Shown here: one piece after another, positions 28,941-55,774 of the stretch
Position numbering within the stretch: the stretch's first letter is position 1
Layout of the letters: each line of letters begins with the position of its first letter
NCBI GenBank assembly: GCA_001179505.1
Contig: CDMY01000290.1
Span: 62,001-126,000, forward strand
Length of the DNA: 64,000 nt
Source: Vitrella brassicaformis CCMP3155
Taxonomy: Eukaryota; Protista; Chromerida
Direction of reading: 5' to 3'
Notes under the pieces: model-generated
Told to the model about the DNA's origin: nothing
What the model saw: only the letters and a program-made list of their open reading frames with translations
The model's database searches: none
Program-made: the position numbers and the translations under genes

Positions 28941-28964
28941 CGCAGCGGTTTCAGGGAGCACCCT
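28941..28964 (+). promoter_or_regulatory. Recurrent 24-nt promoter motif, copy 1
   Basis: cgcagcggtttcagggagcaccct is identical to 55751-55774 and lies in a bidirectional spacer. Confidence 0.6.
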
Positions 28965-29112
28965 AGGTGGCCTGACGGCCAAGTCCCCTTCCGTTTTCTC
29001 GAGTTGCGAGCTTAGCTGGCCTTACGCCTCCGCGCTGTTGTGGACGTCTCCGGTAATGGGCAGATAGATCATCAATCAAAAGATCCCAGCTTGCGGCAAT
29101 CACATCACAAGA

Positions 29113-30293
29113 ATGCCTCGTCTGACGTTCATAGCTCGTGCGACGGACGGTTTGATCTTGGTAGAGACCTGGGACGACATCAACAACAACAAGAGCCTGC
29201 AGACGTTCAAGCAGCAGGCCAAGCAGCTGCTCAAGAAGCTCGACCAAGCCCCGCCCAGATGCTCCGTCGACTCATCCACACACACCTTCCAGTGAGGCAG
29301 GCAGGCAGGCAGGCACAGGCGACACACCACACACCTGACACAACACAAGCACCGAGAATTGTCTGTCTGTCTGTCTGTCTGTGTGTGCTTTGTGTCCTGT
29401 TGCGATTTATTGAATCATCCCATCAGTTACTTGTGTGACAGCGGCATCTGTTACATGACGCTGTGCGAGAAGTCCTACCCCAAGAAGCTGGCCTTCTCCT
29501 TCCTCGAGGAGATCCACAGGGCCTTCCAGGAGGAACTCAAGCGGGAATTCGGCACACACTCCGTCGACTACCGCTCCCAGATCGAAACCGTCGAGAAACC
29601 TTACTACTTCATCAAATTCGGTCAGTCACACACTCACACACAGACACACACACACAAGGAAACTGGGTGCTCTTCCTTCCCATGGCGTCGCTGTGACCGT
29701 GGTTGACTGACGTGGTGTGCTGTACGGGTGTGGTCAGACCGAACGATTCAGCGGAAGAAGATGGAGTACCGCGACCCCCGGTCGAACAAGGCGCTGCAGA
29801 AGCTCAACGACAGCCTCACTGAGGTGGCCTCCATCATGAGACAAAACATCGACGAGGTCCTGCAGAGGGGAGAAAACCTTGAAGGTCCGTCCGCCAAGCA
29901 GCACCACACACACAGCCGCACACGGGCCATCCATCATCCTGCGTACTTTTCTGCATGTATGTCTGATGTCTGTCTGCTTGTGTCATTCCTTCATTCAGAT
30001 GTGGGGAGGAAAGCGACGAGCCTCAAGTACGAGTCCGACAAGGTACAGTACACGTCACGTGGGGGATGCAAGGAGGGAGGCTGTAGGGTGGTCGACACAC
30101 GACGGTCGTGTTGGACAAAACCCCTCGGGACCTGCTGCTGTCTGTGGCATGTGGCATGTGTGTATGTCAGTTTCGGAAGGCGGCCCACACGTTGAATCTG
30201 CAGGCACTCGCCCGGCAGTATGCGCCGCTGCTGGTCATCGGTGGGGTCATCTTTCTCTTCATTGTATACAAAGTCTTCTCGTGGACCAGATAG
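29113..30293 (+). CDS. SEC22: SEC22 longin-domain R-SNARE
   Basis: MPRLTFIARATDGLIL, YMTLCEKSYPKKLAFSFLEEI, NIE-like segment IETVEKPYYFIKF, SNARE helix with LQRGENL, C-terminal TM. Confidence 0.96.
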
Positions 30294-30695
30294 CCAGCCC
30301 AAACCAGCCAGTGTGATGTATGTTTTTCAGTGTCGTCTGTTCGTGTGGTGCTTTTCTCGGTATCTCCCTCCCTCCATGCCATGGGTGTGCTTGTGCGTCA
30401 TGTCATCTGTGCATGGCGTGGTGCGTGCGTGTGTGTTTTAAGCTGTGTGTTGATTGATCCGGTCAGACAAGTGCACACACTGACGATCGACCCTCGAATG
30501 GTGTGTAACTCGGTAATACTATGCAGTTTGTTGTCAGATCTACTACTATGCCGGCAACCTACGAGATGGAGCAGCAGCTCGATGCTCGGTCAGCTTCATG
30601 CAGCACTCGAACCCGCAAGACACCCACCGCAAAGCATTGTTACCAGACAGGAATCTCGTCCTCAGCCATACACACCGCGCAGCGCAGTCCCTCGA

Positions 30696-33600
30696 TCACT
30701 CGCCCCCCCCTCCACCCTCTCTCTTCCTGCCAGCGTTCGACAGGTGGGCTATCTGCTGCAGAATGTGCCTCTTCCGCCACTGCCCCGCCCAGCTCTGTGC
30801 ATGCCGGCCCTCAGCGTCAATCCAGTCTCGCTCAGACACACAGATCACCTGCCACCCCAGGGCCCGCAGCGCATTCAGCTCGGCGAACTTCTGTGCCGTC
30901 ACCAGGTGGCTCTTGTACTTGTGTCGGCCGAACTGCCTGACGGCCGGCCCCTCCCAGTAGAAGTCCCAGTCATGCCACAGCAGATAGACCAACACGTGCT
31001 CCTCAGGGGACGCTGCGCTCGGGGTGCTGCCAGTGGAGAATGGTTGGGAGGGCGGGGCCGCACGCACTCGTCCTTCGCCGAGTGATGATGTCTTCATGTC
31101 TTCTTCTGGTGCAGCTGATGGGGGTGGCTCCTCCTCTTCTTGGATGGTCGGCTTGTGTGACTCGTTTGTCGTGTGTGCCGGGCTGTCGATGGACGGTCTT
31201 TTGGACCGCCTCCCCCTCCCTCCCCTCGTAGCAGCTGCCACTGGAGGCTGGCTTTCCTTGTCCCTGCCTGTCTCCAGCTCATCCCCAAGCGTCATCCAAT
31301 CATTCGTCGAGTCCTCCTCTGACGCATCGGCAACCGTGTTGCCGCTGCGGCAGCTCTCCTCGCGCTCGCCGTCGCTCTCCTCTTCCTCCCTGTCTCCTTT
31401 CCCGAAGATGCCATCCTCCGTATTGTCTTCCCCCTCCGACGATTCCTCCGACATCTCCAGCGGCATCAGTGGGTGCTCGCGCAGGTGTCTGGCGAGGCTC
31501 ACGAGGCTGACGGCAAACGGCACCACTAAGGGCCCCACACGGACGTCCTCCAGCACATGCACTCGCTGCCACGACCGCAGCTCCCGCCTGACGCGCTGGG
31601 GGAAGCTGTTGCTGACCAAGGGGGACACGTGGCGACCGCCACACCACCGAGCCGACAAACCAGAGTCGAGCTGAGAGGCCTCCACTGGTGCACGGTCCCT
31701 GTCACGTAGAGGGGGAGCGGTGGGGGCCGTGCTGTCCGGTGAGGGGTCTTCTGGCTGCTGGTTTGCATTGTGTGTCCTGGTCAGTGATGGCGGCAGGAAG
31801 GTGTCTGCGTTGGGTCTGAGTGGGGGTTTGGCGCTGTACATGGCGGGGAGGTCGAGGGATGAGGTGCGGCGGTGGTGGGCGGCCACGGGCTGACACGACC
31901 ACGTGCACTCGTGGAAGAACTGAATGAATGGATGGAGGCACAGACAGGTATGGCTGCTGGCTTTCTGGTGTGAGGGGTACCTTACCTGTTTGACGGTCTC
32001 CGGGCACTCGTCGAGGATTCTCGAGCAGGCGACGAATCCCAGCGATGTCCGCTCGTCTTCACTCAGGGCATCCCTCTGAATGAATGAAGGTAAGGTAGAA
32101 GCGGAACATCACACCACCACAACCATGCCAGCATGCTCATTCTGTTACATTGTGGAGGACGTATTGAGCGACGGGTGTCATCATGGCTGGTGTGAGGCTC
32201 TTTGGCCGCGACGAGAGGTCGAATATGGCCGCAGCCAGCAGCACCGACACTGCGTGGGTCGTCTGGGGCGGAGCAGGCAGCGACACCAATGCTGTTTGTC
32301 TGCACCTTGTCCGCCTGCGTGGTGTGCATACCGATGAATAGGTCAGCGTCGACGCCAGAGGGAAGATGTTCAGCGCATCAGCCTACACACACGCATCAGT
32401 CGATGTATCCCTCTCCCCCCATTCTCCCTCCCTCTCCCTCGTCTCCGTACGTACCACAGTGGGGAGTACCAGTCTGGCCAGTGAGCCCGCCAGCACTGTC
32501 AGGGCGGCCGGCGATGCCACGGGCATCTCATCGTCCAAAGTGCAGCACAGCGACGCCCACCGACGATCACGCACACCCAGACGAGCAAAGATCCACGAAG
32601 CACGAGCAACTGTCTGCAGCCATGACAACACAAACAAACGGAACACCACACCACACCCAGTCGCCCACACCCACCAAAGACGGCTTTCCCTCAACGACTG
32701 ACTCACCATGGGTGCGTGTGGGGCCTTAGTCATTCGTAGGTGTTTGACAAGGTGGGCGGCCAGCTCCCTGTGCGGCCCCAGCCGGAAGCCTGACGGCGAG
32801 GCACACAGCGTCTCGCCCAGTGCGAGCATCTCCTCCACACTCAGCAGCGATAGGCCGTCGCCAACCATCAGACGCAGACACAGGTCCGCCTCCAGCCCGG
32901 GCAAGATCGGCCTGCCCTCAACCTCCAGCCCCTGCATCTCGTCGATCGGCTCCAATGGGGCCTTGTCCACTGTCAGGTCGGTCGGCCGCTGGATGCCGCC
33001 GATGCGGGTGTCCATCGGGAGAGGGGCGAAGGTGTCCTCCGTCGTCGCGACACGCCCCCCAAAGGCCGACCGGTCCGCCCATCGCTTAAGCAAGTGGAGC
33101 ACCTGCAATGCCTGGTCGCCCTCCAAATCGGCCACCCGGTATCTGAGCTCCTCCAGCACTCTGGCCTTGACGACGCTGTCGATGGCCGTGGGGGGGATGT
33201 CTGGGAAGGTGCTGAGCAGCTTGATGAACTCAGGGCCGCGCAGCTCGAACAGCACGTTCTGCAGTTGACGCGTCACCTGCCGCAGCAGCAGGAAGGGGAC
33301 CATCCCGGTGCCGGTGTCTAGGGGCGACGGTCTCTTCTTCTTGCCCAAATGCCGGCCATAGACCTTCCTCAGGGCTCTCCGCTCGTCCTCATCAGCGGCC
33401 TCCTCCCACTCCTCCTCACCAGGCTGGGGCTCCTCCGTTCCCTCCCCCTCAGCTGCTGCTGGTGGCGGTGGTTTGTCGCGTCTGAAGATCTGCTGCATGG
33501 AGAGGAAGAGGAACATCAGGTCGGTGGACCGGAACTTGTGTAGGTGTTTGGACGCCTGGTCCAGCAGCAGCTGGATGAGCGCTCGGTGCGGCAGACCATC

Positions 33601-34826
33601 GCCAGCCTCACTCTCGTCAGAACCGCCCTTGGCGAACCGGATGGGCTCTGATGCTGATGCAGCGTCGCGCAAGACGGCCGCCTCCGGAGTCTCTGCCTCT
33701 GTGGCTGAGGGGCCGACCGGCGCACCGCCGCTGTCGTCTCTCTTGTTGCTGTGGAGGAATGAGGCTCTCTTGGTGAAGGGCACCATGTGTGATGGGGGGA
33801 AGGTGAAGGCGTGGAGCAGCAGGCTTAGGGTCAAGGGGTTCTCGAGCTTCCTTATCCGTGGGGCGATAGCTGCAGCCACCCTGTCGAGCACCGCTTGTCG
33901 GCTCGGCCCGTCGATCCGCACATAAGCATGGGCAAGGACGGCTATGTCCTGTGCGTCAAGGACAGACAGACAGACAGACAGGCAGACAGGCAGACAGGCA
34001 GACAGGCAGACAGGCAGACAGGCAGACAGGCAGACAGGCAGGCAGGCAGGCAGGCATAAGAAAAAAGTGACGATAGGATCCTCCTCCTTGCCATGTCACC
34101 TTCGGTGGCGCCTGTGGCGTTAATTTCTTATAGATGACCGGCAGGGCGGCCTCGACGAGGAATCTGTCCTCTCTCCTCAGCTTGCACACACTCACCAACA
34201 GAAGGGCCAGGTGGCCCAGCCGGAAATTGTGCAGCCGCCCTCGCAAACCCTGCACAGTCCACATGCACAGCAGACAGACACAGACAAAGCCTCCTTCGTG
34301 GCGGTGTGTTTGTTTGTGTGGCCCACGTCGAGCATGTAGTCGAGGAATGAGTCGACCCGTTTGCCGATGGTGGCGAAGCAGTGGATGATCAGTGTGGCGT
34401 CGGCCACCTTCATCTGCGACCGCAGCACCGCCGCCCTGTACATGTAAGCCTCCCACACCTCACGGTGGCGGTAGTGACGCCGAGTGGTCTCCTGGATCGA
34501 ACGACGCAGCGCCGTGCCGTCCATCTGGTAGATGCGCTTCTGCAGGACAAACAAATCAGACACACACGGACACACATTCACGAGATTGATTCATGAATCA
34601 GATGAACTTGGCTGTGATCTGTCTGCCCATGAGTGTCGATGCCTACCAGTGAGGGAATGGCGGGGTTGTGGCCCTTGGCTGTCAGCAGTGAGCGCCCCTG
34701 GACACTCTGCCGCCTCTCGTCCATCGCCGTCATCATTACTGGAGCTGGGAGGGCGCTGTTTTGCCACGGCAGACCTCTCTGCACGAGCCCCCCTGCCGAA
34801 GGCGGCCTTCTGCACGTCTGAATCAT
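30696..34826 (-). CDS. RAP-domain protein with helical (HPR/OPR-like) repeats, probably organellar RNA-binding
   Basis: C-terminal LRALGWQVICVSERDW RAP signature. Helical repeats DATLIIHCFATIG, HLALLLVSVCKL, DIAVLAHAY, TDLMFLFLSM. Arg-rich N-terminus. Confidence 0.8.
33960..34056. repeat. Intronic compound microsatellite (GACA)n-(GGCAGACA)n-(GGCA)n
   Basis: Directly visible; typical of the introns throughout the window. Confidence 0.9.
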
Positions 34827-34874
34827 GAGCAGATCTTTCTAGCTCGCCATCGCCAAGCTCGCAGTGAGGATTCG

Positions 34875-37800
34875 CAGGAATACGACGTGTTCCGAGTGAA
34901 TTGAGACTACCATGTCAGCGGCCTCCCTTCATTGAGCCGAGATCTGGCCATTTTGCTGTCCGGTGCTGCACCGTGGTAACCGTCTAACGCATCTGCGTCA
35001 TCGCACGTCATCTCTGCGTCTGACAGCCGCCAGGGAGAGCCCATGAGCAAGCCGACGTGACGGCAGCAGCAGAAGCGACGATGGCGAGTGAGCAGATCCA
35101 CCCCCCTGGCGCCTCACCATCAGCAGCCGAGGAGGGCTCTCGGGCTCCAGCTATGCAGGCGGGCGAGGCGGCCGCTCCATCAACAGAAGCGCGTCAGGGC
35201 GGCCATTCATCTGTCCCTGCTCAGCTGGCTCATTCGGGCCCTCAGTGTGGTGCACCAGCCAGTGGTGCAGCGGTGATCCAAACCGATCTCGGAGCAGGTG
35301 ACATGGCAGCAATGCAGCCGGCCTCGTCGACTACTAGCCTGTCTGCATTGCTGGCGGCCGTCGTCACCCCCAAGCCCATCCCCGCACACCCACACCAACG
35401 CTCACACCCACAGGGGCAGCAGGGCGGTCAGACCCCTCCTGCCGGCCATGACCTGCTACTCAATCGCGGTGGCAAGCGGCAGAGGACCGGTCGGGGCCGC
35501 GGCCGGCGGTCGGCGGGAGAGGTAGAGGGTCAGGAAGAGTACACGCCCGAGAACGACTTGGCTGCGGCGCGGCATGAGGCGAGGGGTCATGCTGGTAGTC
35601 GTGGCGGTGCTGCGGAGGACCACCAGGCCCTCAATCCAGCCACCCACATGTCGCCCGAGGAGGAGGGCAAACACGTGAGTCAGAGGGGGAGAGAGAGGGA
35701 GAGAGAGGGAGAGAGAGTCCCTGCCTACACACACAACAACCCAATCCCGTCTGTATGTGTGTGTAGATCACCGAGTGTTTGAAGGAGTATCTGCCCAAGA
35801 AGCCCAACGGCAGGCCGGCCCCCCTGGGCCTGCCAATGGTGCAGGGCAAGGGCGTCCGCGTCCAGCTCTACCACCCAAGCGTCGGCGCCCTCTGGGGACC
35901 CACTCGCAACTTCGAGCAGCTCAATTCAGTCAGATCCGGCTTCAAGGCCGCCTGCGAAGACCGCGAACAGGTAGGCACACACATACATACAGACACGTCC
36001 CCGTACGCATTCTGACGCCAATGTGAATATGTGTCTGTGTGTGTGGTTGATGGATGTGTGTGTGTATCAGTTTGTGCGTGACATCTGGGGTCCGAAGGGC
36101 GAGGCCCACCAGCTCCACCTGCTGCCCGGCTGGGAGACGGTCGTCGACGACTCACCCCAACCCGCCACCACCCTGGCCATCGCGACCGACCGGGCCGAGC
36201 AGGTGCCTCAGCAAGGGCCACCGCAGATCACGACAGGCGCCCACTCATACGCACCCCCCGCCCCAGACCCACCGGCACCAGGACCACCACGCGACTTCAT
36301 TACCACGGCCGGCGCGGTGTAGTCATGATCGACGTGCGGCGGATCAATCTGCAGCCACAGCCGACGGACAAGCATGACGCCGACAAAGGCACGAGTGCTG
36401 GTGCGGCCTCCAAGGGTCCGGCACATGACGGCAGGGAGGCGGATGTGTGTGGTGTTGGGGGCGATGACGACATGGATTGGGCTGATGACGTGTCTTCGCG
36501 TGACGGACAGCCGGGGCACAAGGCCGGCAAGGCTAACACCGTCTGCCGCAAACGTGCCGAGCATCAGTCAGCCGTGCAGGGCGTCCACTGGTGTGAGCGG
36601 GGTCAGTACTGGCAAGCGAACTGGTACGACAAGGGCGACGGCAAGCAGGAGCGCAAGCGGTTCTCCGTCAAGGAGCATGGCTTCCACAAAGCGAAGGTAC
36701 CGACGTCGCATCGCAGCACCCTGCCTCCATCTCACTCTCTGTTTCCCCAAACATATGGATCAGGAGCTGGCTGAGCACCATCGTCTCGAGATGGAGCGCA
36801 ACGGCCGGGCAGTTGTGAAGAAGCGTTCGAAGCACCAGAGCGGCGTCAGGGGCGTCAGCTACTCCGAAGGATACAAGAGCTGGGTGGCCGAATGGCGTAA
36901 GGGCGGCAGGAGGAAGACCAAGGCCTTCTCCGTCAAGCAGCTGGGCTACGAGGAGGCCAAACAGGCGGCCATCGCACACAGACGGGAGATGGAGCAGCGG
37001 CACCACACGTCAGAGGGCGGGGCGACGAGAGATGAGAGCCGTTCCCACAACCCCCCCAATGATGATGATGATGATGAGATTCTTTCGCCGCGCCGCCACG
37101 GCCCCCCCAGCAGCAGGCCAGATTTGGGTGGGATGGAGGGCGGCGACCTGGCTGCTGCGCTCGTTGAGGTCCTCAGCAGCGACGGGTAAGACAAGACAAG
37201 GGAATACAAGGAAGGGCCCGATTTGTCGCGTGTGTACATGTGTGTGGGATGGATTCTTTCGGTCAGGTCATGCGGGTTGTGTTGGCAGGACGGCGGCTTC
37301 CGTGTCCGTCTGCCGTCCTCCGAGGGGGAAGATGGCGAGGACCGCATTGTCGATGTCCCGGTGGTCGACCTCAGCTCCCGTTCGGCCGTTATCGCCGCTT
37401 TTCGCCGCGCCGTCGAGGAGCTCAACCGCCTGAGCACTGCTAGTGAGGGAGGGGCCGCTGCACCCCTGGACATCAGCTGGCTCGATGACATCAGCCCCGA
37501 CGGCTGCGATCGACCTCGGACGCGCCGCCGCAGCGGAGCGAGGCGCGAGCCCATGCCGCCCCCGTCTCTGTCTGAGGGCCCCAGTGACCGTCCACTTTAC
37601 AACGATGACCCCATGGCGCCCCACATTCAGCGCCGGCGCCGCCACAGAGGCAGGTCGTCACCTCGTGTCAGTGAGAGGCCAATAGCCGACTCGTCCAGCT
37701 CCGAGAACGAGCTGCTCATCGACCGGCCAGCAGCCAAGCGCCATCGTGAGGACTCGGGCGGCGAGAGGGAGCGCTGTGTGTCGGCGAAGCTGAGTGAGGC

Positions 37801-39370
37801 GGGCGGCAATTCTCTGGCGGCCAGCCTGGTGGAGCAGGCAAAGCCTCAGCTGGCGGACCTAAACCGAGACGATGCCGACGGGCAGCAATGGAGCGCATCG
37901 AGACCAGAGGGTTCGACTCGTGGCGGGTCATCCGACCACAACCCCTCTCGCAAGCAGCGCCGCAGACATACGGCTCTCGCCAGCAGGAGCCCATCCACCA
38001 TCGAGGGGCGGATCGGACACCGGAGCGGCGTCAAGAGCGTCAGCTACGACAAGAGACACAACTCATGGGTGGCCCGCTGGAAGGAGGGGGGCAGCAGGAA
38101 GAGCAAGCACTTCATGGTCGAAAGTCTTGGCTTCGAGGGTGCTAAGGAGGCCGCCATCGCACACAGACGACGGAAGACGGAGCGATTGCACACGTCAGAG
38201 GGAGGGGCCAAGAGGCATGGCGACCAAGCTGACTCGAGAAGTGCCGACGATGGCGACGATCCTCTGCCCGTCAAACAGCGACAGGCGCCTCAGCTGCGTG
38301 ACGGTGGTGTGGGGGGCGGTGTGCTTCTGCACCCTACGGCTCGCCGTGACACCAACCGACCGCGGCGCCGCAGAGACGACCGATTCGAGTGCAATCCCTC
38401 ACCTGCAGACATCGAGGCCCCCAGTTGGCTGCGGGAGGGCCCACCGGCAACGCCGCCGACACACCACACGGCCAGTCGCGGCCCTCGTGTGTCGCCGGTG
38501 CAGAGGGGGCATCTGATTCGCCACTTCTACCAGCAGCTGGAGGCACTCGGCCGAGCCCATCCCGACACGCCCCTCTGTCTGCGGTTCAGGAGTGGGTCTG
38601 CCCTGCCACAGCTGGCCGTCGAGGTGGTCCTGCCCGGCACCCCAGTGCAGTCGGTGCCCCTCTCAGCGGCCACCAGGGAGGCCATGGGGGCGGCCGTCGA
38701 TGCCGCATGGGCATGCCGCCAGCAGGAGATGGACATTGACAGTACTGAGGACCAGCAGCCCATGATACACGCCCAGCGGATGGTCCTATGCCGTCTGTAT
38801 GGTCAAGTGGGTCACAACATTGGGGCGATGCTGGCGGCCGTCCCCTCTCTGAGCTTTGCGTCTATCGACTTGTTTGTGCGCCATGGGCTGCCGGCCATGG
38901 TGGGGCAGCGTGACGGCGAGGACCTCAAGGAGGCCGCCAGTCGATTCATCAAACAGCTTCACCACCTCGGTAACCAGCACACCACACCAGCCATGTCCAA
39001 GCGGCTCAAGGCGGCAGATGACGAGCAGCTGCCGAGTGGCCATCACCGGCTGGCCGATATCGACATGACGATGCGGCCACCACTCCATCAGCGCGTCAAT
39101 GACCCGCACCCACCCAATGTGCCGCAGGAACGAGATCCGAATGAGGCCGATCGCATGGCGGATGGGGAGGTGGGCGGTGGGCGGGATGGTGAGCGCGACG
39201 ACGGCAATTGCGAGAGGGAGGGCGAGATGATTCCGTTCGATGAGCTGACGAAGGGTCGGTCAGCTGGTGGAGCTGCTCAAGGCCCACCCATCACCCGACA
39301 TGCGACACTTAGCCGACAGCATCATGGTCAGCTCACCACAGACACATGTGAAGGCAGACGTGGTAAATGT
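34875..39370 (+). repeat. Segmental duplication unit 1 (promoter plus AP2 gene body)
   Basis: Aligns by eye with 42212-48448, from caggaatac through the intron motif gtgaaggcagacgt, with internal indels. Confidence 0.9.
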
Positions 39371-40681: not shown

Positions 40682-42129
40682 TCATGTCCCACCTCGCCCC
40701 ACATCATCGCCCCCGTGGCCATCTCCCCCGTTGTCCTGGTTGGGGTCCTCACCGTCGAATATGATGGGCGCGATGGGGCCCAGGACGGGGCGCGCCAGGG
40801 CGGTGGTGAGCGGGAAGCGGTGCTTGAAGGGCGCACTCTCAGCCACACCAGGTGCAGGCGTCTCGCTCGTCTTGACGGACACCAACACTGCAGACACACA
40901 CCTCTGTTTTCTCACGTCATGTGTCCCGTCTTCTCTGTCTGGTTTGGAAAGGCCCTCTTCTCATTATGTACCATATTCGTCATCAACGGTATCGCAAAGT
41001 TGTAGCCATGCGATGAATGGCTGGTCGTAGGCCGTCAGCAGCAGCTGCACGTGGTACATATCGGGTGCCTGGTATGCCGTCACTGCCGTGGTGCCAGCGA
41101 CCGGCTGATGGGGCGGCCGATCGATGAGGCCAGCCAACACACCACCACGAGCATCGCTGCAACACACCAACATATGAGTGTACCCATGCATGAATCGGTG
41201 TGTCCCTCGTGTCATGCTGACCGGCGGACGCTTCTCCCGACGTCCTTGACCTGTTTGTACGGCAGCAGGGTGTTGATGATGAACCCCGAGAAAGACGCAT
41301 TGGTCCAGGGACCATCAGCCGCCGACCAGCCATCGCCACTCAGTCCGATGCGATGACTGACGGGGGGGTTGTGGGGCAGGGCGTTCTGCTGGATGGGGTT
41401 GTTGGCGGGGAGGGGAGGGGTGAGGTCTATCGCATACGCGGCGTCGTCTTCAACGGCACGCAGCCCGCCGCCAGGCTGACCGAACAGCTCGACTGTGCCG
41501 TTCTTGGCGCCCACGTGGCGGCCGACCATCTTCCACTGAGCTATCACACGGGGCTGAGCCATATACGCCTACACGACACAAGGCATACACACACAGAGAT
41601 GAGTGCCGCCCACCATCCAATCCACGCCATCTGTCTGTTCTGTGTACCTGTTTGCTTTGGTGCTTCTCGAGGTCTTGCTGTGTGATGTTGACGGGCAGCT
41701 CACAGTAGGTGAGCTGACGCGCCAGCCGCAGTGCGTCGGCCACCTCGTCCCAACTCTGATCCTCAACCAAGTACATGGCCTATGTTGACACAGTGGAGCA
41801 TGCCACCCATCCCCCAGGCCATCTGTCTTCCTTCTGTGTACCTGCAGCAGCAGCTGGTCCTCCAGTTGTGCGTCATCGAACGTCAGCACAGTGTCCAGCG
41901 GCGTCCCGTCGGCAAGTGTCGTGTCGTGCAGGGCGCGGGCGAGCCGTCGGCGCAGCACGTCGGTCTCAAAGTCGACCTGCGATAGGAAGAGGGCGGTGGA
42001 TCTGAGGACGCCCAAGTCCTTGAGCTTGTGCAGCCTGTCCCGCTCTTCTCGATGGATGAAGTCCGGCTGCTGGCCGCGGATCGATGGCCAGTGCTCGTCG
42101 TTGCTTCTTCTGCTCACATTACCACCCAT
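40682..42129 (-). CDS. Lineage-specific multi-exon protein with MGxxxS N-terminus
   Basis: MGGNVS start. Exons join into ...FKHRFPLTTALARPVLGPIAPIIFDG.... No recognisable universal domain. Confidence 0.7.
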
Positions 42130-42163
42130 TTCCTTCTCAACTCAATCTCGGCTTGACGGGCCT

Positions 42164-42186
42164 AGGGTGCTGCCTGAAACCGCTGC
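42164..42186 (-). promoter_or_regulatory. Recurrent promoter motif, copy 2 (reverse orientation)
   Basis: agggtgctgcctgaaaccgctgc is the reverse complement of the motif with 1 mismatch in 23. Confidence 0.6.
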
Positions 42187-42211
42187 CCGCTAGCTCGCGT
42201 TGTGAATCTCT

Positions 42212-45200: not shown

Positions 45201-48200
45201 GACCCAACCGCAAGCCCTCGCCTGACATCGAGAGCCACGGTGGGCTGCGGGAGGGCCCCCCTGGTCATCTGCAGGAACATCGCACGGCCACTCATGTGAC
45301 GCCACTCCAGCGGCAGCGGCATCATAAGTCAAAAGCCGACACCCCGGGAGATGAGAGCCTTTCCCGCAGTCCCCCCAATGATGATGGTGCGATTCACTCG
45401 CCGTGCCGCCACGGGCCCCCCAGCTGCGGGCCAGGTGTGGGTGTGATGGAGGGCGGCGACCTGGCCGCTGCCCTCGTCGAGGTCCTCAGCAGCGACGGGT
45501 AGGGAAAGACAAGGGAAGACAAGAAAGGGCCAGATTTGTCACGTGTGTGCATGTGTGTGTGGGATGGTTTCTTTCGCGCAGGTCATGCGAGCTGTGTTGG
45601 CAGGACGGCAGCTTCCGTGTCCGTCTGCCGTCCTCCGAGGGGGAAGATGGCGAGGACCGCATTCTCGATGTCCCGGTGGTCGACCTCAGCTCCCGTTCGG
45701 CCGTCATCGCTGCTTTTCGCCGCGCTGTCGAGGAGCTCAACCGTCTGAGCACTGTCAGTACGGGAGAGGCCGCTGCACCCCTGGACATCAGCTGGCTCGA
45801 TGACATCAGCCCCCACGGCCCCATTCGTCCTCGGACGCGCCACCGCAGCAGCAGAGCCAGGCCCAAGCCCATGCCGCCCCCGTCTCTATCTGAGTGCCCC
45901 AGTGGCCATCCACTCGACAACAATGACCTCATGCCGCCCCACATTCAGCCTCGCCGCTGCCACAGAGGCAGGTCGTCATCTCGTGTCAGTGAGAGGCTGA
46001 GAACGGACTCGTCCAGCTCCGAGAACGAGCTGCTCATCAACCGGCCAGCAGCCAAGCGCCATCGTGAGGACTCGGGCGGCGAGAGGGAGCGCTGTGTGTC
46101 GGCGAAGCTGAGTGAGGCGGGCGGCAATTCTCTGGCGGCCAGCCTGGTGGAGCAGGCAAAGCCTCAGCTGGCGGACCTAAACCGAGACGATGCCGACGGG
46201 CAGCAATGGAATGCATCGAGACCAGAGGGGTCGATTCGTGATCAGTCATCCGACCACAGCCCCCCTCGAAAGCACCGCCGCGCTCTCGCCAGCAGAAGCC
46301 CATCCACTATCGGAGCGGCGGAACACCGGAGCGGCGTCAAGAGCGTCAGATACGACAAGAGATACAACTCATGGGTGGCCCGCTGGAAGGAGGGGGGCAG
46401 GAGGAAGAGCAAGTCCTTCTCCGTCAAGTAGCTTGGGTTCGAGGAGGCCAAAAAGGCCGCCATCGCACACAGACGGAAGATGGAGCGATTGCACACGTCA
46501 GAGGGAGGGGCCAAGAGGCATGGCGACCCGGCTGACTCGAGAGGTGCCGACGATGGCGACGATCCTCTGCCCGTCAGACAGCGACGGGCGCCTCAGCTGC
46601 GTGACGGTGGTGTGGGGGGGCGTGTGCCTCTGCACCCTACGGCTCGCCGTGACACCAACCGACCGCGGCCCCGCAGAGACGGCCGATTTGACCGCAATCC
46701 CACGCCGGCCCCCAGTTGGCTGCGGGAGGGCCCCCCTGGTGGGCTGCAGGAGCATTGCACGGCCACTCGTGTGTCGCCGGTGCAGAGGGGGCATCTGATT
46801 CTCCACTTCTACCAGCAGCTGGAGGCACTCGGCCGAGCCCATCCCGATACGCCTCTGTGTCTACGGTTCAGGAGTGGGTGTGCCCTGACCCAGCTGGCCG
46901 TCGAGGTGGTCCTGCCCGGCACCCCAGTGCAGTCGGTGCCCCTCTCAGCGGCCACCAGGGAGGCCATGGGGGCGGCCATCGATGCCGCTTGGGCATGCCG
47001 CCAGCAGGAGATGGACATTGACGGCACTGAGGACCAGCAGCCCATGACACACGCCCAGCGGATTGTCCTCTGTCGCCTGTACAGTCAAGTGGGTCACAAC
47101 ATTGGGGCGATGCTGGCGGCCGTCCCTTCTCTGAGCTTTGCGTCCGTCGACTCATTTGTGCGCCGTGAGCTGCCGGCCATGGTTGGGCGGCGTGACGGCG
47201 AGGACATCAAGGAGGCCGCCAGTCGATTCATCAGACAGCTTCAGAAGACCAATCAGCAGAACACCAGGCTGGGCTACGAGGCTGCTATGGCTGCCGCCAC
47301 CCCTCACAAACGGGCCGTGATGGAGCAGAAACCATGTGAGCATCAGAGCGGCGTGCGGGGCGTGTATTTCGACAAGGCACACAACGCATGGATTGCCAAC
47401 TGGTCGGAGGGCGGCACGAAGAAGACCAAGGACTTCTCCGTCAAAGAGCTCGGCTACGAGCCTGCCAAACAGGCCGCGATCGCGCACCGCCGTGCGATGG
47501 AGGAGAGGCACTCGACCCTCTTCGGCAGCGACAGGCAAGAGGGCGGCCAGTGTGATAAGTCTGTCAATCGCAGTCCGTCTCTGAAACACCGCTGCAGAGA
47601 CCCATCCGCCAGCAGCAGCGCATCCGCCGTCGAGAGGCGACAGAGACCCAAGGGCAGCAAGACAGCCGAGGCCACCAAGGGCAAGACGGCCGCCATCCGC
47701 AGACGTGCCGAGCATCAGTCAAAGGTCGTGGGCGTCTCCTGGGATGGGAAATTCCGGGCGTGGACGGCGTCATGGTATCCGAAGGACGGCACCAGGCAGA
47801 AGAAAAAGCACTTCAAAGTCGGAGAGCACGGCTTCGACAAAGCAAAGGTATGCAAGACCTACATGGCCTGAAGCAAAGGTGCTTATGGACCAGTCGTTTT
47901 CCTTCTCTCTCTCTCTCTCTCTCTCTCTCTTCGCCTCAGGCGTTGGCTGAGCAGCATCGTCTCGAGATGGAGCGCACCGGCCAGGCAGTGGACAGGGGGC
48001 GAGTCAAGCGCCAGAAGGGCCACCGGCTGGCATCAGCCATATTCGAGCGGCTCAAGGCGGCAGATGACGAGCAGCTGCCGAGTGGCAATGAGCCGCTCGA
48101 TATCGACGTGACGCCGCAGCGCATGAGTCGAGACGCGGCCGATGTGGTCCCGCAGACGCAGTCCCCCTCGCCAGCCAATGGCCCGCACACACCTGATGTG

Positions 48201-48448
48201 ACGCCCGATGCACGAGATCCGGCCGCTGCCCGTCGCATGGTGGATGGGGCGACGCACGGAGGACGGGATGCTGGGCATGGCGACGGCAATGGCGAGAGGG
48301 AGAGCGGGATGATTCCGTTCGATGAGCTGACGAAGGTTCAGCTGGTGGAGCTGCTCAAGGCCCACCCATCACCCGACATGCGACAGGTTGCCGAGAACAT
48401 CATGGTCAGCACACCACACTCATTTGTGAAGGCAGACGTCATAAATGT
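42212..48448 (+). repeat. Segmental duplication unit 2
   Basis: Homologous to 34875-39370, with extra exons and extra AP2 modules. Confidence 0.9.
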
Positions 48449-48927
48449 ATGTGGCCAACTGTGTGTGTGTGCGTGTGTGTGTTTCAGTTGGTTGAGAAGT
48501 ACGCGCCTCAGCAGCTGTTCACTGGTGGCGGCCACACTTTATCTGAGCCCTCGCACGCCCCGCCGCCCCCCGCCCCCAACACCGCCAAAGACCACGACTA
48601 CAGCCCCCCCATCAACACTGACAAGCCCACCACCAAGGTCAGTGTGTGCCCAGTCACACAGGCGACAGCCAACGGTGCCCTTTGTGATGGCATTGATTGC
48701 AGGTGACGCTGCGGCTGCACACGGGGGAGCAGGTGAAGCTGACCTTCAACAGCGCCATGGCCGTCAAGGAGCTGTACGCGGCGGCCTCCAAGGCGAGCAA
48801 CATCGGTGTGGCCAGCTTCCGGCTCTTCTCGTCGGCGGCTTTCCCTCCCAAGCCGCTGGACGACCAGGCGCAGTCGCTTGAGGAGGCGGGGGTGATGGAG
48901 TGCCTCGTCACGCAGAAGCTCACATGA
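42422..48927 (+). CDS. ApiAP2-type paralogue 2: five AP2 domains fused to an SHP-box + UBX tail; one in-frame TAG
   Basis: AP2 domains near 44545, 44835, 46323, 47341 and 47710. All introns are phase-compatible. TAG at 46429-46431 sits inside AP2 #3. Final exons encode LFTGGGHTL and a UBX-like domain (VTLRLHTG...FPPKPL...SLEEAGV). Confidence 0.75.
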
Positions 48928-49308
48928 ATGAATGACAGACAGACGGGGAGATGATTCATTCGTGCAGGCGAGGGAGGTGAGGCTGCTGTTTTGTGTGTCT
49001 GAGGTTTGAGAGGGGATGCATGGAGTAAGGTGTGTGTGTCGGTTGACTGACGATGGGGCCTCATAACATAACATACGCACTGACTGAGGTGTGTCGATGG
49101 AGCTGGGTGCGGTGCGGTGCGGTGCGGTGCGTTGCGTTGCGTTGCCTTTATGTATGTGCTTACTCGTGGTGTCGGCTGGCCTGGCCGGGATCTTGGATCG
49201 GTCTGTCGGTGTGGTGCCTTACCTGAATGCCTTTTTGAAGTAAAGACCATTGATAGATACCAGGTTGGTGATGCTTTGGATTGCATGCATTCGTCAGTGC
49301 CTCACATT

Positions 49309-49408
49309 CGTTTTTCTGGCCATATGCGAGACATACCCGCACTTTTTTCATCTTTTTAGCTATCGCACACGGTCGTTCGGATGCAAGCATCACTCGTTCC
49401 TAGAGAGG
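49309..49408. other. Conserved non-coding block, copy 2
   Basis: 98/100 identical to 40126-40225. Confidence 0.85.
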
Positions 49409-50048
49409 TCTTGTCTGCATCGTCGAGTCGATGTGTCGTGTTTTGAGTGGTGGGACGGCCATCGCATGCTGATGATGTTGATGTGAGTCAGTAAGTCAAT
49501 GGTACAGTAGAGACTGCCCTTGGTGTGTGTGTGTCTTTTGGCGTCCTTGTGTGGCTGTTCGTTTATCGGTGTACGTACCATCGAGCAGCTGGCCATGGGC
49601 GCCAACGACCTAGGTCCCTGTGTGTGATGACTTCCCTTTGTTTTTTCTCCTCTTTTTTGGCCGTGTGGCGGTGCATACGATACGGCTTTACTCACGGCTG
49701 AGTTGACCGGTTCGGCACGGGGTGGGGTATCTATGTTTCTGTTCGTTTTGTCTTGACAGACACATGTCGGGATTGAAGCAGTGAGTGGCACATGGCATGG
49801 ACATACAAACTGATAGACAGACAGACAGACAGGAGACAAGAAGATGTGATGCGGTGGATTCGCGCACACGCTGCCGGAACGCCGTGTGATGGAGCGAGTG
49901 ATAATATGGATACTAACGGCCATGTGGTGGGTGTGCGGCCGCGTGGCTGTGTGCATGAGACGGTTGACTCATGGCATGGACGCCCATGGCTGGTGGGGAT
50001 GCTGTCTGCAATGAAATGCCCGCTTCAATCAAACAAACAAGTCTCACC

Positions 50049-50099
50049 AACACGTAACACGCAACACGCAACACGCAACACGCAACACGCAACACGCAA
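50049..50099. repeat. Heptamer tandem repeat (AACACGC)n
   Basis: About 7 units directly visible. Confidence 0.9.
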
Positions 50100-50723
50100 G
50101 AGGGCAGAAGCAGGCCGGCCGATAGGCACATATGTACAGTATGTCTATTCGCCCGGCATTCGTGTCTCCGCCAGCCAATGCAAATGGACCGATGAGATCA
50201 GTCGCACACACATACGGCACGGCCTCAGCACCAGCACCAACACCAAGACAGAGATGAGTGCAGGGCAGGTATGGCGGCAGGGAGTGAAGGGGCGCAGAGA
50301 AGACAGTCAGGCAGACCGCACCGCACCGCACACCCACGCCGACGACCACAACTCCCTCCCCGAAAAGTCACTAGAGAAAACACAACACACCCCATGCAAT
50401 TCTGGCTGGACTGGACGGAGGTGCCCAAGTTGGGCCGCAACCGTCAAATCCAGTGAATAATGAGACCCACTACACTGGCCAGCCACGGCAATCACTCGAC
50501 AGACAGAACCGCCGATATATGCCGTCACGGTTGGCTGCAGTGCACAAGGCGAGTCAAGTCGTCTTCAAACACACACATACACCACTCACACCCACAACCG
50601 ACACACAGCGTCATGAAAGGGACAGAATCGACCCACACAGATCGAGACCTCACGCACACATCGCATCGCATTCGGACCTAGGAAAATAACTAAAGATGAC
50701 TGCGCTCTCGACAGCCCGATGAG

Positions 50724-51314
50724 TTAGTAGTCAGAATTGTATTGAGAGGCAGCACTGGACACCATGGCGACTTGGATGATAACAATGATGAGCACCAGGA
50801 TGAGCGTGACGCTGGCCGAGATGAGGCAGCGCCAGGCCCACTTGCGCCTCTCCGACCCCTCCGGGGCGTCCATGTTGAAGCAGAAGGCAATGCACCCGAC
50901 GATGGGGAAGAATATCGACAGAATGCACGACACCTGACATCAACATACCACACACACGGGGAGGGCAACGTATGGGCGACTGACTGACTGACTGGCTGTT
51001 TCTCCCTGCCTGCCTGCTCGTCCAGATAAGTCACCCACCTGTGCGCAGCCGAGCATACACGCCTCATCGTCGTATCGGCGATCCACCACCACTGCCTGCG
51101 GGACGTGAATGACGTGTGCACCACCCCCATACTGTGCCGGAATAGCCTGTGGCTGGACGTACTGCGGCTGCTGAACGTACTGCGGCTGATCACCGCCCTC
51201 CGGCTTCCCAGCTGTGTTTGTCGCTTCCAGCGGCTGGCCGACAACAACCGGCTGCACTTCGTATGCCGGTGCAGTGGCGGGGACTACGTTCATGGTGTGG
51301 TCGCTTTGGGTCAT
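50724..51314 (-). CDS. Small Pro/Gln-rich protein with two C-terminal hydrophobic segments
   Basis: QPQYVQ repeats, then CILSIFFPIVGCIAFCF and WAWRCLISASVTLILVLIIVII. One intron. Topology resembles CD225/dispanin (by eye). Confidence 0.7.
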
Positions 51315-51554
51315 GACGTGGCGGACGAAGATCTGGTTGATTTGGCGGAGGTTTCGCTGAAGGAAGTACCGTGAGGAAGGAGGTATCAGCACCGACCGAA
51401 GAAGGGAGGGGAGGGGAGATGAGAGAGGGAGGGAGGGACAAGACGGGGAGGGAGGGAGAGGGGAAATGGAGGGGAAGGGTTTGATGGTCTGGGTTTCTGG
51501 TTTCAAACCCTTTCGGATTTCAAACCCTGCAGCTCCAGCGTCCTGGTGCGGATA

Positions 51555-54500
51555 ATGGAGAAGCTCACAGCCGACCTCACGGCCTCCTTTCCCAAGCTGT
51601 CGCCGCAGACCATCTCTGCGGCGCTGTTTGCCTACTGTGACTCATCCAAGGCGAATCGGCAGACAGATCTCGCCAAGGGGCTCACGCAGCTGCTGAGAGC
51701 ACATGACGGCGACAAAGTGATGGTTGGCTGCAGCCTGCTGGCGGCGCTGGGAGGCGGGCTGGTGGATGTCGAGGCTCTCATGGGGAAGGCGCTGACGCCC
51801 GAGTGCATCGAAGGGTGGCTGCAGACGCTCTCGGCAACACTCAAGAAGGTCTGTGTGTGACGATTGTGTGATTTCGATGAATGCCTGTGCGTGTCACTTA
51901 TGTGTCTGTCTGCAGGAGGGAGACTGGGTGTCCACATTGGCCGCCATCGAGGCGTCTGTGGGCGTGTTTCATCTGTGCGAGCGACTGCCCGTCGACACGC
52001 GCCATCGCCTCGTCCGTGAGGGGGCGGCATCAAGCACCCGAAACCTCATGGCCGTCCTTGACGCCATTGACCGCCACGCAGCTGTGCCGACGATCCTGGT
52101 GAGGCGAGGCGACCAACCGACGACAGACGAACGCTGGTAACATGTTCGTGTGTGTGTCTAGGAGCGTGGCTGCCGTGGTTTGTCATCAGTGCTCTTCCGG
52201 TCTTCCTTCCCTCTCTACCAGCTCATGGGTAAGGCTGTCCACCTGATCTCCACGTTGAGACCTGCCTCTCTTCTCGTCTCGTTGTTCTGGAGGCCGGCTG
52301 CGTGCCTTCTTCCTCAAGGTCTCACAGCACGACGACGACACCCTCGCAGAGGTGAATGAGGACGAAAGCACCATAGAGTGGCTGCGGTTACAATGCCAAT
52401 TCTCATGACGTGGTGTTCTGTGTGTGTCGTTCACCGATTGGTTCGTTCAGTTGTCGCGCTGCTCACTATGTCGGCTGAGCTGGATCGCCAGCAGCAAGAG
52501 GGCGCCCAAGACCGACGGACCACAAGCAGCAGCAGCTGCGGCTGCATCCTCTGACGAAGGCAAGATGGGTCCGGCGTTCAGTGAGCACCTCCTTGCTCAA
52601 ACCACCAATGACCTTAATGCAGGCAAGACACACACACACAGGCAGGCGGTGGACGCACCGTACCATCAAAGCAATATAACCTGATGAGTCTGTTCATCGT
52701 GTGTGCAGTGCTGGGTCTCCTCAAGGATGGCAGTGTGTCGGGCAACACGACAGCGGCCGCCCTGTGGCACCGCGCCACCCGCCTCTTCCAGCTGCTCACA
52801 GCCCTCATTCTCCACTCGGCAGGCGGCAGGATGCGCCAGGGGCTGGGCACTGTTGAGCTGAGCCCCGCCACACACAGCATCGTTGTCATACCCGTGCGCG
52901 AGCTGCTGCAAGTTGTTCGTGTGGCCGTGGGTGTCAGCAGGGGAGGCGGGATGGGGGGCGGTGAGGGGGATGGTGCAGCGTCGGTGGTCGACCAGAGGTG
53001 TGTTGTGCTGATGGGGGCAGCATTGGAGGTCCCGGTGGCCATACTAAATGTGTAAGGGAAGACAGGAGGGTGCAGACGAGAGACTCTCTTCTGCACCTGT
53101 TGTGGCTGTATGTTGTTTTGAATTCAGGCTCGGCAGCGGGGCTGTTTCGGTCTACAGCCAGCACTTCATCACCATACTGGACGAGCTGTGCAGGTAGGCA
53201 CACCATCATACACACAAGCCAAGCCAAGCCAAGCCACAGTACCCGTTTCTTGCATCTTGATGTGCCGCCCTCCCTTGTCAGTTTCGAGAGCGACTCCATG
53301 GCGGCCCTCCACGCCTTCGCCTTCTCATCCCCCATCCACAGCTACCTATTAACCCTCGCATCAGCCATCCCCGCCGCCCTCATAGCCTCCAACACATGGA
53401 AGACACCCTTCGAGTGGGCAGTCGCCGCCATCAGCCACATGCTCACCCCGTCGACCTTCCCCTCCCTCTGCCGGATGGCTGCACACTCGGCACACGTCTC
53501 AGAGGCCGAGTATACCGCCGACACTAGCGAGCTCTCATCCATTGCGGGTGGGAGGGCGACGAAGCGACGCCGCGGGAGGTCCAGAGGCGGCGGTCTGTCG
53601 GACTATGGGTCATGGGGAGAGTCGGCGGGGGACCAGGATGCCGTGGGGCTGATCAGAGCGCACAAGACGCAAGAGATGGCCGTTCCGGAGATGCGGATCG
53701 CTTTTGCAAAGGTCTTTGTAGATCTCTGCGGCTCACTGACGGCTCTTCTGACCGGCGTGGGGAGCTTCCTAGGAGCCACCGAGAAGGCGCAAGCTGAAGA
53801 GCTCGCCATCGGTGTGCTATTCCACGGCCAGCAGCCCGAGACGCTCAAGAAGAGCCCCGCCACGGCCGTCCTCTGCGGCCGGCCGTCAGCCGTGCTGGCG
53901 GTGCTGCGGCTGATGGAGGCATCTCTCCTCGGCCCCTCTCCCCTCCCCAGTGCGACCCTCCACGCATCCATCGGCCTACTGAATGTCACGGAGGCGACGG
54001 CAACTGACGGCGGGAGAGTGGCTGCTGCGGCTCGTGCGCTGAAACGGAAGCTGCTGGCAAGAGTTGGCGGTGGGTCCATTGGCCGTGAGAGCGATGAGGG
54101 CATCTTCCTCCAGGCCTACGGCGAGTCCCTGAGGGAGGCGCTGCACGAGTATGTCGACACTGGTGAGGCGCCTGCCGATCAGGAAGGCATGAATGGCTAT
54201 GGAGAGGCGTCGGCCATGGAGGAGCCCCCGGCTGCAGCTGCCGCGGCAGCCGCGGCAGCTGCCGCAGCCTCAGCGTTCGACCAGCCGATGGGGGCGGCCG
54301 CTGCCTTGGCAGATAGGACCCAGCAGATGGAGCCACCACCGCCCGAGCCCTTCGCTGTCCTTGACGGACCGGTCCAGCAGGAAGGAGCTGACCTGGAGAT
54401 GACGGCGGCCGAGCAGGGAGAGTCTACTTCTGATGGGAGAGGGGCAGGCGAGGCGCCAGCGGTACCGCAAGAAGCGAGCCCTCCTGCCGCAGCTGCTGCC

Positions 54501-54733
54501 GCCGCCAGTGCGAGTGCCGCCGCTCAAGGGAAGCAAGTCAATGCGCTGTTTTCTGTCGGTAAGGAGATGCGGAAGCGGGCGGCTGGTTGTCAGTGTCTGA
54601 GTGTCAGGGTGTTGTGTTGTGTGTATTGATTGATTGCAATGGTTCAGATATGAGCGACATGGCGGCCGCCGAGGCCTTTGTGCGCGACAATCTCAACATG
54701 GATAGCCCGTCGGGCGGGGAGGAAGAGGACTGA
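51555..54733 (+). CDS. Rix1/PELP1-like helical protein (tentative)
   Basis: Long Leu-rich helical exons, VIPVRELLQVVRV motif, basic NLS TKRRRGR, Ala/Glu/Pro-rich tail ending LNMDSPSGGEEED*. Family call by eye. Confidence 0.5.
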
Positions 54734-55078
54734 CTGACTGACTGTCGGATGGATGGATGGATGGATGGATGGTGCATTCATGAATTCATGGTCAGTGAGG
54801 TCATGGTGTTGACACACCTTCCTGTCCCATCAAGCAGCTTGGCCGCAAGTGCAAGTAGGTCAACACAAGACATACACGTACACTGGTACCAAACCACAGA
54901 CGCACAGAGACGAAAAAGAAGCATCGCATGGCACGACAAACGAGCTCGCTCGTATCCCTTATCCTCCCATTGATTTGACACACGGCGGAAGCACAGCACC
55001 AGAAACCGACACCCGAGAAAAAAGTCGTGCAGCACGACCCACCCCCTCCCCTCACTCGCTTGGAGTGAAAAATCACCT

Positions 55079-55664
55079 CTACCAGTCTCCTCCCCAGCCG
55101 CCGCCATCATCCCCGCCCCACCCGTCCCCCCCATCATCCTGACCATTGTCGTCCTGACCAGGCCATCGAAAGGCCTGATTGGGATCATCCCCCCAGGACC
55201 AGCCGGAGTCAGCGGGGTTCTGCTGCGCGTCGGACTCACTGCCCTGGGAGGGAGGGGGAGGCTGGGAGGCCTGTGAGGGGTCCTCATGCGTGTGATGGAC
55301 CTCCATCTGGCGCGGACCAAGGAAGGAGTCCATCAGCCGCATGCCCATCCCCCACCCCAAACCATGCGCCATCCCATCCATGATAGCGCCGAAGATGCCT
55401 GGCCTCTGGTACTGGGCGGGAGGCTGATTCTGATACTGCTGCGGCGCGTACTGGCCTTGCTGTTGCTGTTGTTGCTTGGCCTGTTGTCCTTGACCGAACC
55501 ACGAGAAAGCTCCCTGTGACGGATACGGCCCTTGCTGCTGCTGTTGAGCCTTCTTGGTGGCATGCTTCATGATACGGGCACCTGCAGCCACCACACAGAG
55601 CATGCAGTAAGGCAATCCGCACGTCGGCTGCTCGCGTACCTTTTTTCAACACGTTGCGCGTCAT
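55079..55664 (-). CDS. Mix17/CHCHD2-like protein lacking the CHCH domain
   Basis: Basic N-terminus MTRNVLKK/GARIMKH (58-nt intron 55582-55639). Central GIFGAIMDGMAHGLGWGMGMRLMDSFLGPRQMEV. Gly/Asp/Trp tail; no Cys. Confidence 0.65.
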
Positions 55665-55750
55665 GTTGGCTCGACGACTTTAATGAAGGGGAGAGGGAGC
55701 ACCAGACTTCGATGTCGAGCACTTTCACCAGAAGTTCGCCAGGCTTCGCA

Positions 55751-55774
55751 CGCAGCGGTTTCAGGGAGCACCCT
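55751..55774 (+). promoter_or_regulatory. Recurrent 24-nt promoter motif, copy 3
   Basis: Identical to 28941-28964; lies 46 nt upstream of the ATG at 55820. Confidence 0.6.

Follow-up and report, generated by a model that had tools for sequence, protein, structure and literature searches.

What does it mean when one and the same word of 23-24 nucleotides recurs in the promoter spacers of unrelated genes? The question arises from a stretch of 64,000 nucleotides of the chromerid Vitrella brassicaformis CCMP3155 (assembly GCA_001179505.1, contig CDMY01000290.1, positions 62,001 to 126,000 of the forward strand), referred to below as the window and numbered from its first letter. A sequence-only reading of the window had noticed the motif in three spacers and had proposed for it either a composite cis-regulatory or core-promoter element or a tiny mobile-element relic at promoters. 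The analysis described here bore out the second proposal and specified it. We consider it very likely that the motif corresponds, in antisense, to the final 23 nt of a V. brassicaformis retrotransposon lacking long terminal repeats (LTRs), of the R2-like group of long interspersed nuclear elements (LINEs) with a restriction-like endonuclease (RLE), that its copies are 5'-truncated stubs of this element, usually no longer than 23-60 nt, and that the element homes to promoters carrying the 8-bp word TGCGAGCT.

The window was searched with the 24-mer, and exact matches were recovered at 28941-28964 and 55751-55774, both on the plus strand (copies 1 and 2), while 100 dinucleotide-preserving shuffles of the window returned none. 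A third copy was found on the minus strand at 42164-42187 (copy 3) with 2 mismatches, corresponding to the single mismatch over the first 23 nt that had been read at 42164-42186, and the continuation to ...CCCTAGG, likewise described for two copies, was present in copies 1 and 3. Each copy occurs in a spacer between outward-facing ATG-start open reading frames (ORFs), located at 28795(-) and 29113(+) for copy 1, at 55664(-) and 55820(+) for copy 2 and at 42129(-) and ~42250(+) for copy 3, and is oriented toward the nearer start codon, thus confirming that the copies lie in short spacers between divergent genes and point toward a gene start. The ORF at 29113 we take by eye, from its beginning, to be SEC22-like, and that at 55820 gave a weak LRR_4 match, which suggests a leucine-rich repeat (LRR) protein.

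The genome-wide scan that the sequence-only reading had suggested was then carried out on the V. brassicaformis assembly (72.7 Mb, 1064 contigs). The 23-mer was found 114 times without a mismatch and 376 times when up to 2 mismatches were allowed, a reversed control giving 0. Ninety perfect copies (L001-L090) were aligned and oriented on the motif, which never stood free in any of them and was always one end of a longer repeat. On the 5' side of the motif the flanks were unrelated among the copies right up to the motif itself, apart from a GCA that directly precedes it in about two thirds of the cases and yields a 26-nt constant end; at the GCAGCGG end the copies have a sharp boundary in common. 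On the 3' side, homology extended from 23 to more than 520 nt, with a stopping point that differed from copy to copy. Nearly a third of the copies (31/90) measured 23-26 nt and half did not exceed 36 nt, the lengths (23, 28-43, 53-137 and 148-523+ nt) grading into one another without a second distinct class. Copies that break off within the 23-mer, and are therefore shorter than 23 nt, also occur genome-wide. At the other extreme, a step-wise walk outward from the motif proceeded for more than 2.2 kb and then entered a coding region, the longest copy recovered (L106) exceeding 4 kb (~4.2 kb), and the long copies were 97-100% alike.

Target-site duplications (TSDs), which vary in length from 9 to 17 bp, bound the copies on both sides. 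A direct repeat of at least 11 bp was detected in 17/90 copies as compared with 1/90 in a control in which the probe was shifted by 60 bp, and an independent repeat finder showed that both perfect window copies are TSD-bounded, by repeats of 13-14 bp and 11-12 bp respectively. Copies that agree at one end, differ at the other and carry TSDs of unequal length bear the signature of target-primed reverse transcription, and the motif is therefore assigned to the antisense strand of the 3' terminus of the element.

The same position of the motif was obtained from the coding part of the element. L106 (G000:C376:444500-454398) carries the element in sense orientation on its plus strand, and the contig end cuts it about 245 nt before the motif. 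An ORF at L106:5917-7362, on the strand opposite to the motif, matched the reverse transcriptase (RT) family RVT_1 with an E value of 1.8e-9, and a second ORF of 312 amino acids (8526-9461) ends about 680 nt before the motif end of the element. The 312-aa ORF gave no match in Pfam and, by phmmer, none in the PDB; its identification was therefore based on an exhaustive HMMER search and on fold comparison. The search collected 1958 homologues, and in long proteins the domain is located C-terminal to RVT_1. In an alignment of 34 members C90, C93, C107 and D173 were invariant and H103, K207 and E228 nearly invariant, a pattern from which the ORF is predicted to comprise a CCHC knuckle and a PD-(D/E)XK nuclease. 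For this endonuclease AlphaFold returned a confident model, with a predicted local distance difference test (pLDDT) of 88.5 and a predicted template modelling score (pTM) of 0.86. The six best fold matches of the model in the PDB were all R2 retrotransposon proteins (Bombyx, zebra finch, turtle) with probability 1.00, followed by PD-(D/E)XK nucleases (Cas4, cap-snatching and restriction nucleases). On at least seven contigs this ORF and the motif occupy opposite strands and follow each other as expected, and the ORF is kept in about a dozen copies at 76-100% identity. Since both RT and endonuclease lie on the strand opposite to the motif, the motif falls at the 3' terminus of the element, which its architecture, fold, TSD behaviour and site specificity place among the RLE-type LINEs.

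The well-defined insertion sites share a precise geometry. In nearly all of them, past the far TSD, 4 (+/-1) unconserved nucleotides are followed by TGCGAGCT on the motif-bearing strand, and a logo of the insertion sites returned T-GCGAGC-T with flat flanks. The core GCGAGC was present on the same strand within 45 nt past the far end in 43/84 copies (51%), compared with 1.1% of random windows, a 47-fold enrichment, and with 9% on the other side. Among the 17 copies with a TSD of at least 11 bp, 11 had GCGAGC at +4 to +6, so that the full word starts 3-5 nt after the TSD; one had the one-mismatch variant TGCGATCT at the same offset (+5), three had the word inside the TSD, with words in tandem, and two had a reverse-oriented word just after the TSD. 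Genome-wide, TGCGAGCT came within 3-33 nt after the motif core at 43 sites, whereas its complement did so at 5, reversed controls giving 0, and two of the five opposite-strand sites consist of the palindrome TGCGAGCTCGCA. In the long copy L106, AGCTCGCA stands just before the start of the RT-homologous part. The targets are dispersed promoter spacers and not ribosomal DNA (rDNA), and no ribosomal RNA known to Rfam was found near the copies examined.

This geometry would account for what had made the motif look regulatory. Because TGCGAGCT stands upstream of start codons in gene orientation, the stubs are found in short divergent spacers and point at the gene, and a fixed distance to TGCGAGCT, given the link between word and gene start, therefore yields the spacers, the orientation and the non-homologous flanks. 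Judged from sequence, the stubs would mark promoters, and their location there would follow from the preference of the element for TGCGAGCT.

Both perfect window copies exhibit this anatomy in full. Copy 1, at 28942..28987 (minus strand in element sense), is a relic that retains 46 nt of the LINE 3' end after 5' truncation; its family homology runs from the GCAGCGG end to 28987, where the TSD starts, and its first 23 nt on the plus strand are the motif. Its left TSD, CTTCCGTTTTCTC, lies at 28929..28941 (28929-28942 equals 28988-29001 at 100% in the repeat finder); the last G of the left repeat is shared with the first base of the insert, so the TSD measures 13-14 bp. The right TSD, returned by the repeat finder and by the TSD script, occupies 28988..29000, and the target word TGCGAGCT follows 4 nt past it at 29005..29012 (+), 101 nt ahead of the SEC22-like ATG at 29113. 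The leading C of the 24-mer, at 28941, is accordingly part of the TSD and not of the repeat. Nor does the claim that the flanks are not homologous extend beyond the window copies, copy 1 being homologous to the genome-wide family through 28987.

Copy 2 is an extreme case of 5' truncation, a 27-nt insert at 55748..55774 (minus strand in element sense) made up of GCAC and the 23-mer. The left TSD, (T)CGCCAGGCTTC, is located at 55736..55747 (55736-55747 equals 55774-55785 at 100% in the repeat finder), and its first T is shared with the last motif base, so the TSD is 11 or 12 bp long; the repeat finder placed the right TSD at 55775..55785. Here too TGCGAGCT was found 4 nt past the right TSD, at 55790..55797 (+), 22 nt ahead of the ATG of the LRR protein at 55820, and it is followed by a GGCGAGCT variant of the target word at about 55823. 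A second 10-nt piece of the motif, AGGGAGCACC, was returned by the repeat finder at 55694..55703, 69 nt upstream of copy 2, and may be the remnant of an older insertion into the same promoter. Partial second copies of the motif were also observed tens of nucleotides from the full stub, within the same spacer, at L041, L042, L060 and L062; such double pieces suggest repeated hits on one promoter.

The sequence-only reading had further reported a shorter version of the motif upstream of the FHA gene. The 13-mer CCCTGAAACAGCT is indeed present at 16496..16508; however, it showed neither a TSD nor any further family homology, and neither the strand nor the side on which TGCGAGCT occurs, at 16429, suits its orientation. 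The 13-mer is probably a chance match or a very old relic and not a member of the family.

On these grounds a course of events can be proposed for the insertion. The element protein, acting on its own or by way of a host factor sitting on TGCGAGCT, would nick the strand that bears this word some 4 nt to the 5' side of it, a position deduced from the insertion junctions. The freed 3'-OH would prime complementary DNA (cDNA) synthesis on the 3' end of the element RNA, as in the target-primed reverse transcription established for R2, and the new strand would start with (GCA)GCAGCGGTTTCAGG... Synthesis would mostly abort after a few dozen nucleotides, and the second strand would be cut 0-17 bp away, giving rise to the variable TSD. 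The excess of tiny copies is probably the result of abortive reverse transcription combined with selection against long insertions beside the promoter word.

Several observations weigh against the assignment to an R2-like LINE aimed at TGCGAGCT promoters, and concern the insertions, the word and the parent element. Roughly half of the perfect copies lack an exact GCGAGC in their neighbourhood; among them, some show a one-mismatch or a reverse-oriented word and some nothing recognisable, and target specificity is strong, not absolute. No TSD of at least 7 bp was detected in 39/90 copies, absent TSDs being common among RLE elements. Copy 3 of the window, a subfamily variant at 42161..42187 (plus strand in element sense) with CAGGCAGCACC replacing CAGGGAGCACC, has no TSD according to the repeat finder, and the one-mismatch target-word variant CGCGAGCT at 42192..42199 (-) lies on the wrong side, next to the 3' end and not the 5' end of the stub; the copy may be old or rearranged, and its G-to-C variant also stands beside TGCGAGCT at seven other loci. 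An ORF-based test of whether TGCGAGCT precedes genes has no power, as 66% of random positions in this GC-rich sequence have an ORF of at least 60 aa within 250 nt. A GGCC-tetraloop-GGCC hairpin is present in the minimum-free-energy fold just inside the last 26 nt; the fold of the 3' end is no better than that of shuffles (z = -0.06) and was not taken as evidence for a structured end that stalls the RT, which stays a mere idea. As to the parent element, no full-length copy was among those recovered. The RT piece retrieved by phmmer against the PDB only weak retroviral RTs and no R2 protein at E <=1, and the link to R2 is therefore carried by the endonuclease fold and the architecture. Seven long relatives, which are not the Vitrella motif family itself, showed only RVT_1 in Pfam, so the absence of an apurinic/apyrimidinic endonuclease (APE) is seen in relatives only and not in the motif family.

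Some further features of the repeat set were recorded. Some stubs are embedded in larger duplicated units: L010, L080 and L086 (C214, C745 and C872) have some 100 nt of flank in common to either side, and L011 and L012 (C217:112631 and 118153), 5.5 kb apart, agree over at least 1 kb of upstream flank; a few of the copies therefore derive from segmental duplication and not from insertion. About 100 additional matches to the endonuclease domain were found at 25-49% identity (for instance in C656, C559 and C630), some of them in open frames of 1200-2200 aa, and V. brassicaformis therefore harbours several distinct RLE-LINE families. Within L106, between 6500 and 8500, the RT region occurs as a near-exact duplicate on either side of a 300-N gap (7363-7662), which looks like a scaffolding artefact and separates the RT ORF from the endonuclease ORF; in relatives the two are fused.

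Other classes of sequence were considered and discarded. A short interspersed nuclear element of ~377 or ~607 nt did not hold, since each such end had its own TSD and other copies continue for at least 1600 nt into coding sequence; the features expected of such an element, namely a common 5' end, an RNA polymerase III promoter and a tRNA-like or Rfam-like head, were not found in the family. A known RNA gene was dismissed as Rfam at gathering thresholds returned 0 matches on the window, on L105 and on L110 (3' 2 kb of the element). A miniature inverted-repeat element or other DNA transposon disagrees with the single constant end, the lack of terminal inverted repeats and a TSD length of 0-17 bp.

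The explanation that survives best beside the proposed one keeps the same mechanism and changes only the source of specificity, which would come from tethering to a host DNA-binding protein seated on TGCGAGCT, the domains of the element not reading the DNA. Precedents exist in Ty3 with TFIIIB and Tf1 with Sap1. A host protein would suit a word that is strongly over-represented in the host genome, and would also suit a second, probable LINE family, whose different tail GAGCGGTTTCACGGA (333 copies) lies beside the same word at several sites. However, such precision of the nick (+/-1 nt) typically goes with direct recognition of the kind found in R2, and related families could share an inherited DNA-binding domain. 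We regard tethering as unlikely, while giving it serious weight.

Less probable is the idea that the stubs are copies of a separate short RNA, either a 'tail-only' non-autonomous retroposon or a processed fragment of a 3' untranslated region, mobilised in trans by the LINE protein. The pile-up of very short copies (31/90 at 23-26 nt and half within 36 nt), together with hundreds of stubs as against about a dozen copies of the endonuclease ORF, would fit such an RNA. Against it, a length continuum without a second class was observed, copies shorter than 23 nt exist, and the features mentioned above (common 5' end, RNA polymerase III promoter, tRNA-like or Rfam-like head) were not found. We therefore hold this explanation to be improbable.

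Somewhat lower still we rank the possibility that the 23-24-mer is a genuine cis-regulatory or core-promoter element under selection or, in a weaker form, that transposon stubs have been co-opted as binding sites. A long word with 114 perfect copies, placed in promoter spacers and in fixed orientation to the downstream gene, would ordinarily invite this interpretation, which the sequence-only reading had put forward as the origin of the motif. Yet the insert is bounded by TSDs, which refutes the strong form, and the copies share one end and form an unbroken series of lengths that starts near 20 nt and passes 4 kb, their parent element encoding an RT and an R2-like RLE. A longer repeat family with TSDs, which that reading had itself named as speaking against a regulatory origin, is what the genome-wide search recovered. 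Moreover, targeting of TGCGAGCT fully accounts for position and orientation, and recent insertion predicts perfect identity equally well, the long copies being 97-100% alike. Finally, random insertion with survival only beside TGCGAGCT in promoters, a retention bias that a compact gene-dense genome with spacers among its few tolerant places might favour, is very improbable in view of the TSD-to-word offset fixed at 4 (+/-1) nt, the strand ratio of 43 to 5 and the 47-fold enrichment over random windows, and a position beside a promoter word is not obviously the least harmful one.

With the motif very probably explained as the tail of an R2-like LINE, attention shifts to the word itself. TTGCGAGCT occurs 2246 times genome-wide as compared with 197 times for the reversed control, an over-representation of about 11-fold. 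The window contains eight TGCGAGCT sites, at 3611, 3625, 16429, 29005, 45586, 55790 and 60394 on the plus strand and at 34856 on the minus strand, and all of them have a same-strand ATG-ORF downstream; the starts of the SEC22-like, LRR and FHA genes are among them, at 30-200 nt, the first two at 30-110 nt. On this sequence evidence TGCGAGCT is a better candidate than the motif for a real promoter signal.

Pairs of TGCGAGCT within 10-40 nt were also counted: 119 are facing (TGCGAGCT...AGCTCGCA), 11 back-to-back and 188 in tandem, with controls at 1-2. Many facing pairs extend to TGCGAGCTTAG...CTAAGCTCGCA and are therefore longer inverted repeats.

A second dispersed repeat with a related end, GAGCGGTTTCACGGA, was present in 333 copies with at most 1 mismatch versus 12 in the control (examples are C33:172163-172206, C69:116973-117022, C193:161935-161990 and C358:42032-42078). 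It has the GCGGTTTCA core in common with the motif and is wedged beside TGCGAGCT at several sites, and probably forms the tail of a sister family of LINEs that shares this target.

The hexamer AGATCT, often as GCAGATCT or AGATCTGC, occurs within 100 nt of the insertion site at 18-23% of loci L001-L090 as compared with 1.8% of random 100-nt windows, and may be a second promoter-region word. GCAGATCT showed no enrichment in the 64-kb window and was discarded as a second window motif.

Taken as a LINE tail, the striking 23-nt 'promoter motif' of the window turns out to be transposon debris and a false lead is removed, with the general warning that the location, the orientation and the perfect identity of such debris can make it pass for a regulatory element. 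A LINE aimed at a short word before many different genes is unusual in a compact 72.7-Mb genome. Its insertions provide independent, strand-specific evidence for TGCGAGCT as a discrete and accessible DNA signal at Vitrella promoters, so that both the word and the protein reading it become directly testable, and for site-directed insertion there is practical interest in R2-type proteins that recognise new, short targets. A more far-reaching proposal, which we advance tentatively and hold to fall somewhat short of an even chance, is that an R2-like LINE lineage with at least two families with related tails reads the 8-bp TGCGAGCT directly, nicks 4 nt away and homes to hundreds of single-copy promoters in place of a multicopy 'safe haven', its aborted insertions continually seeding identical sequences of 20-60 nt into promoters throughout the genome, some of them perhaps recruited as regulatory modules. 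If true, the lineage would supply a built-in marker by which a promoter signal of chromerids, as yet undescribed, could be mapped, and a natural short-target relative of R2 for targeted-insertion technology.

Among known systems, the closest are the RLE LINE clades (R2, R4, CRE/SLACS/CZAR, NeSL/Utopia and HERO), with which the Vitrella element shares an RT followed by a CCHC knuckle and a PD-(D/E)XK endonuclease of R2-like fold at the C-terminus, sequence-specific integration by target-primed reverse transcription, the lack of a poly(A) tail, frequent 5' truncation and TSDs that are variable or absent. The R2 clade proper inserts at a conserved site in 28S rRNA genes. Its different target and an RT without detectable similarity to R2 in the PDB set the Vitrella element apart from R2 proper. 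It differs from all these clades in that its target is an 8-bp word before hundreds of different, apparently single-copy genes.

Other mobile elements resemble it in behaviour. Ty1 and Ty3, the Dictyostelium TRE elements upstream of RNA polymerase III genes and Tf1 at RNA polymerase II promoters also insert at a short fixed distance upstream, concentrate their copies in promoters and leave coding sequence intact. Ty1, Ty3 and Tf1 are LTR elements that employ an integrase and protein tethers, while TRE is a LINE of the APE type, and none of them is known to have its target set by a DNA word of 8 bp, with the nick some 4 nt from it. The relict spliced leaders of dinoflagellates offer another likeness, being identical sequences of about 22 nt upstream of many unrelated alveolate genes and originating by retroposition. 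The dinoflagellate leader, however, is the 5' end of a trans-spliced mRNA and arrives together with a retroposed gene (mRNA recycling), whereas the constant end in Vitrella is a LINE 3' end, antisense to the gene, with its own TSD and before a resident gene; a spliced-leader relic was accordingly rejected.

The Vitrella genome has been reported to contain only ~1.5 Mb of transposable elements (PMC4501334), and neither the motif family nor the word TGCGAGCT is described in that genome paper; in the open-access literature we found no paper joining Vitrella with a restriction-like endonuclease. LINEs with sequence-specific insertion have been published as targeting multicopy genes and repeats, a choice held to underlie their survival (PMC4640811). 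As far as our searches of the open-access literature reach, a dispersed 8-bp promoter-associated word before single-copy genes is a new kind of LINE target and, should the element prove to read the word directly, it would represent a new target class for site-specific LINEs.

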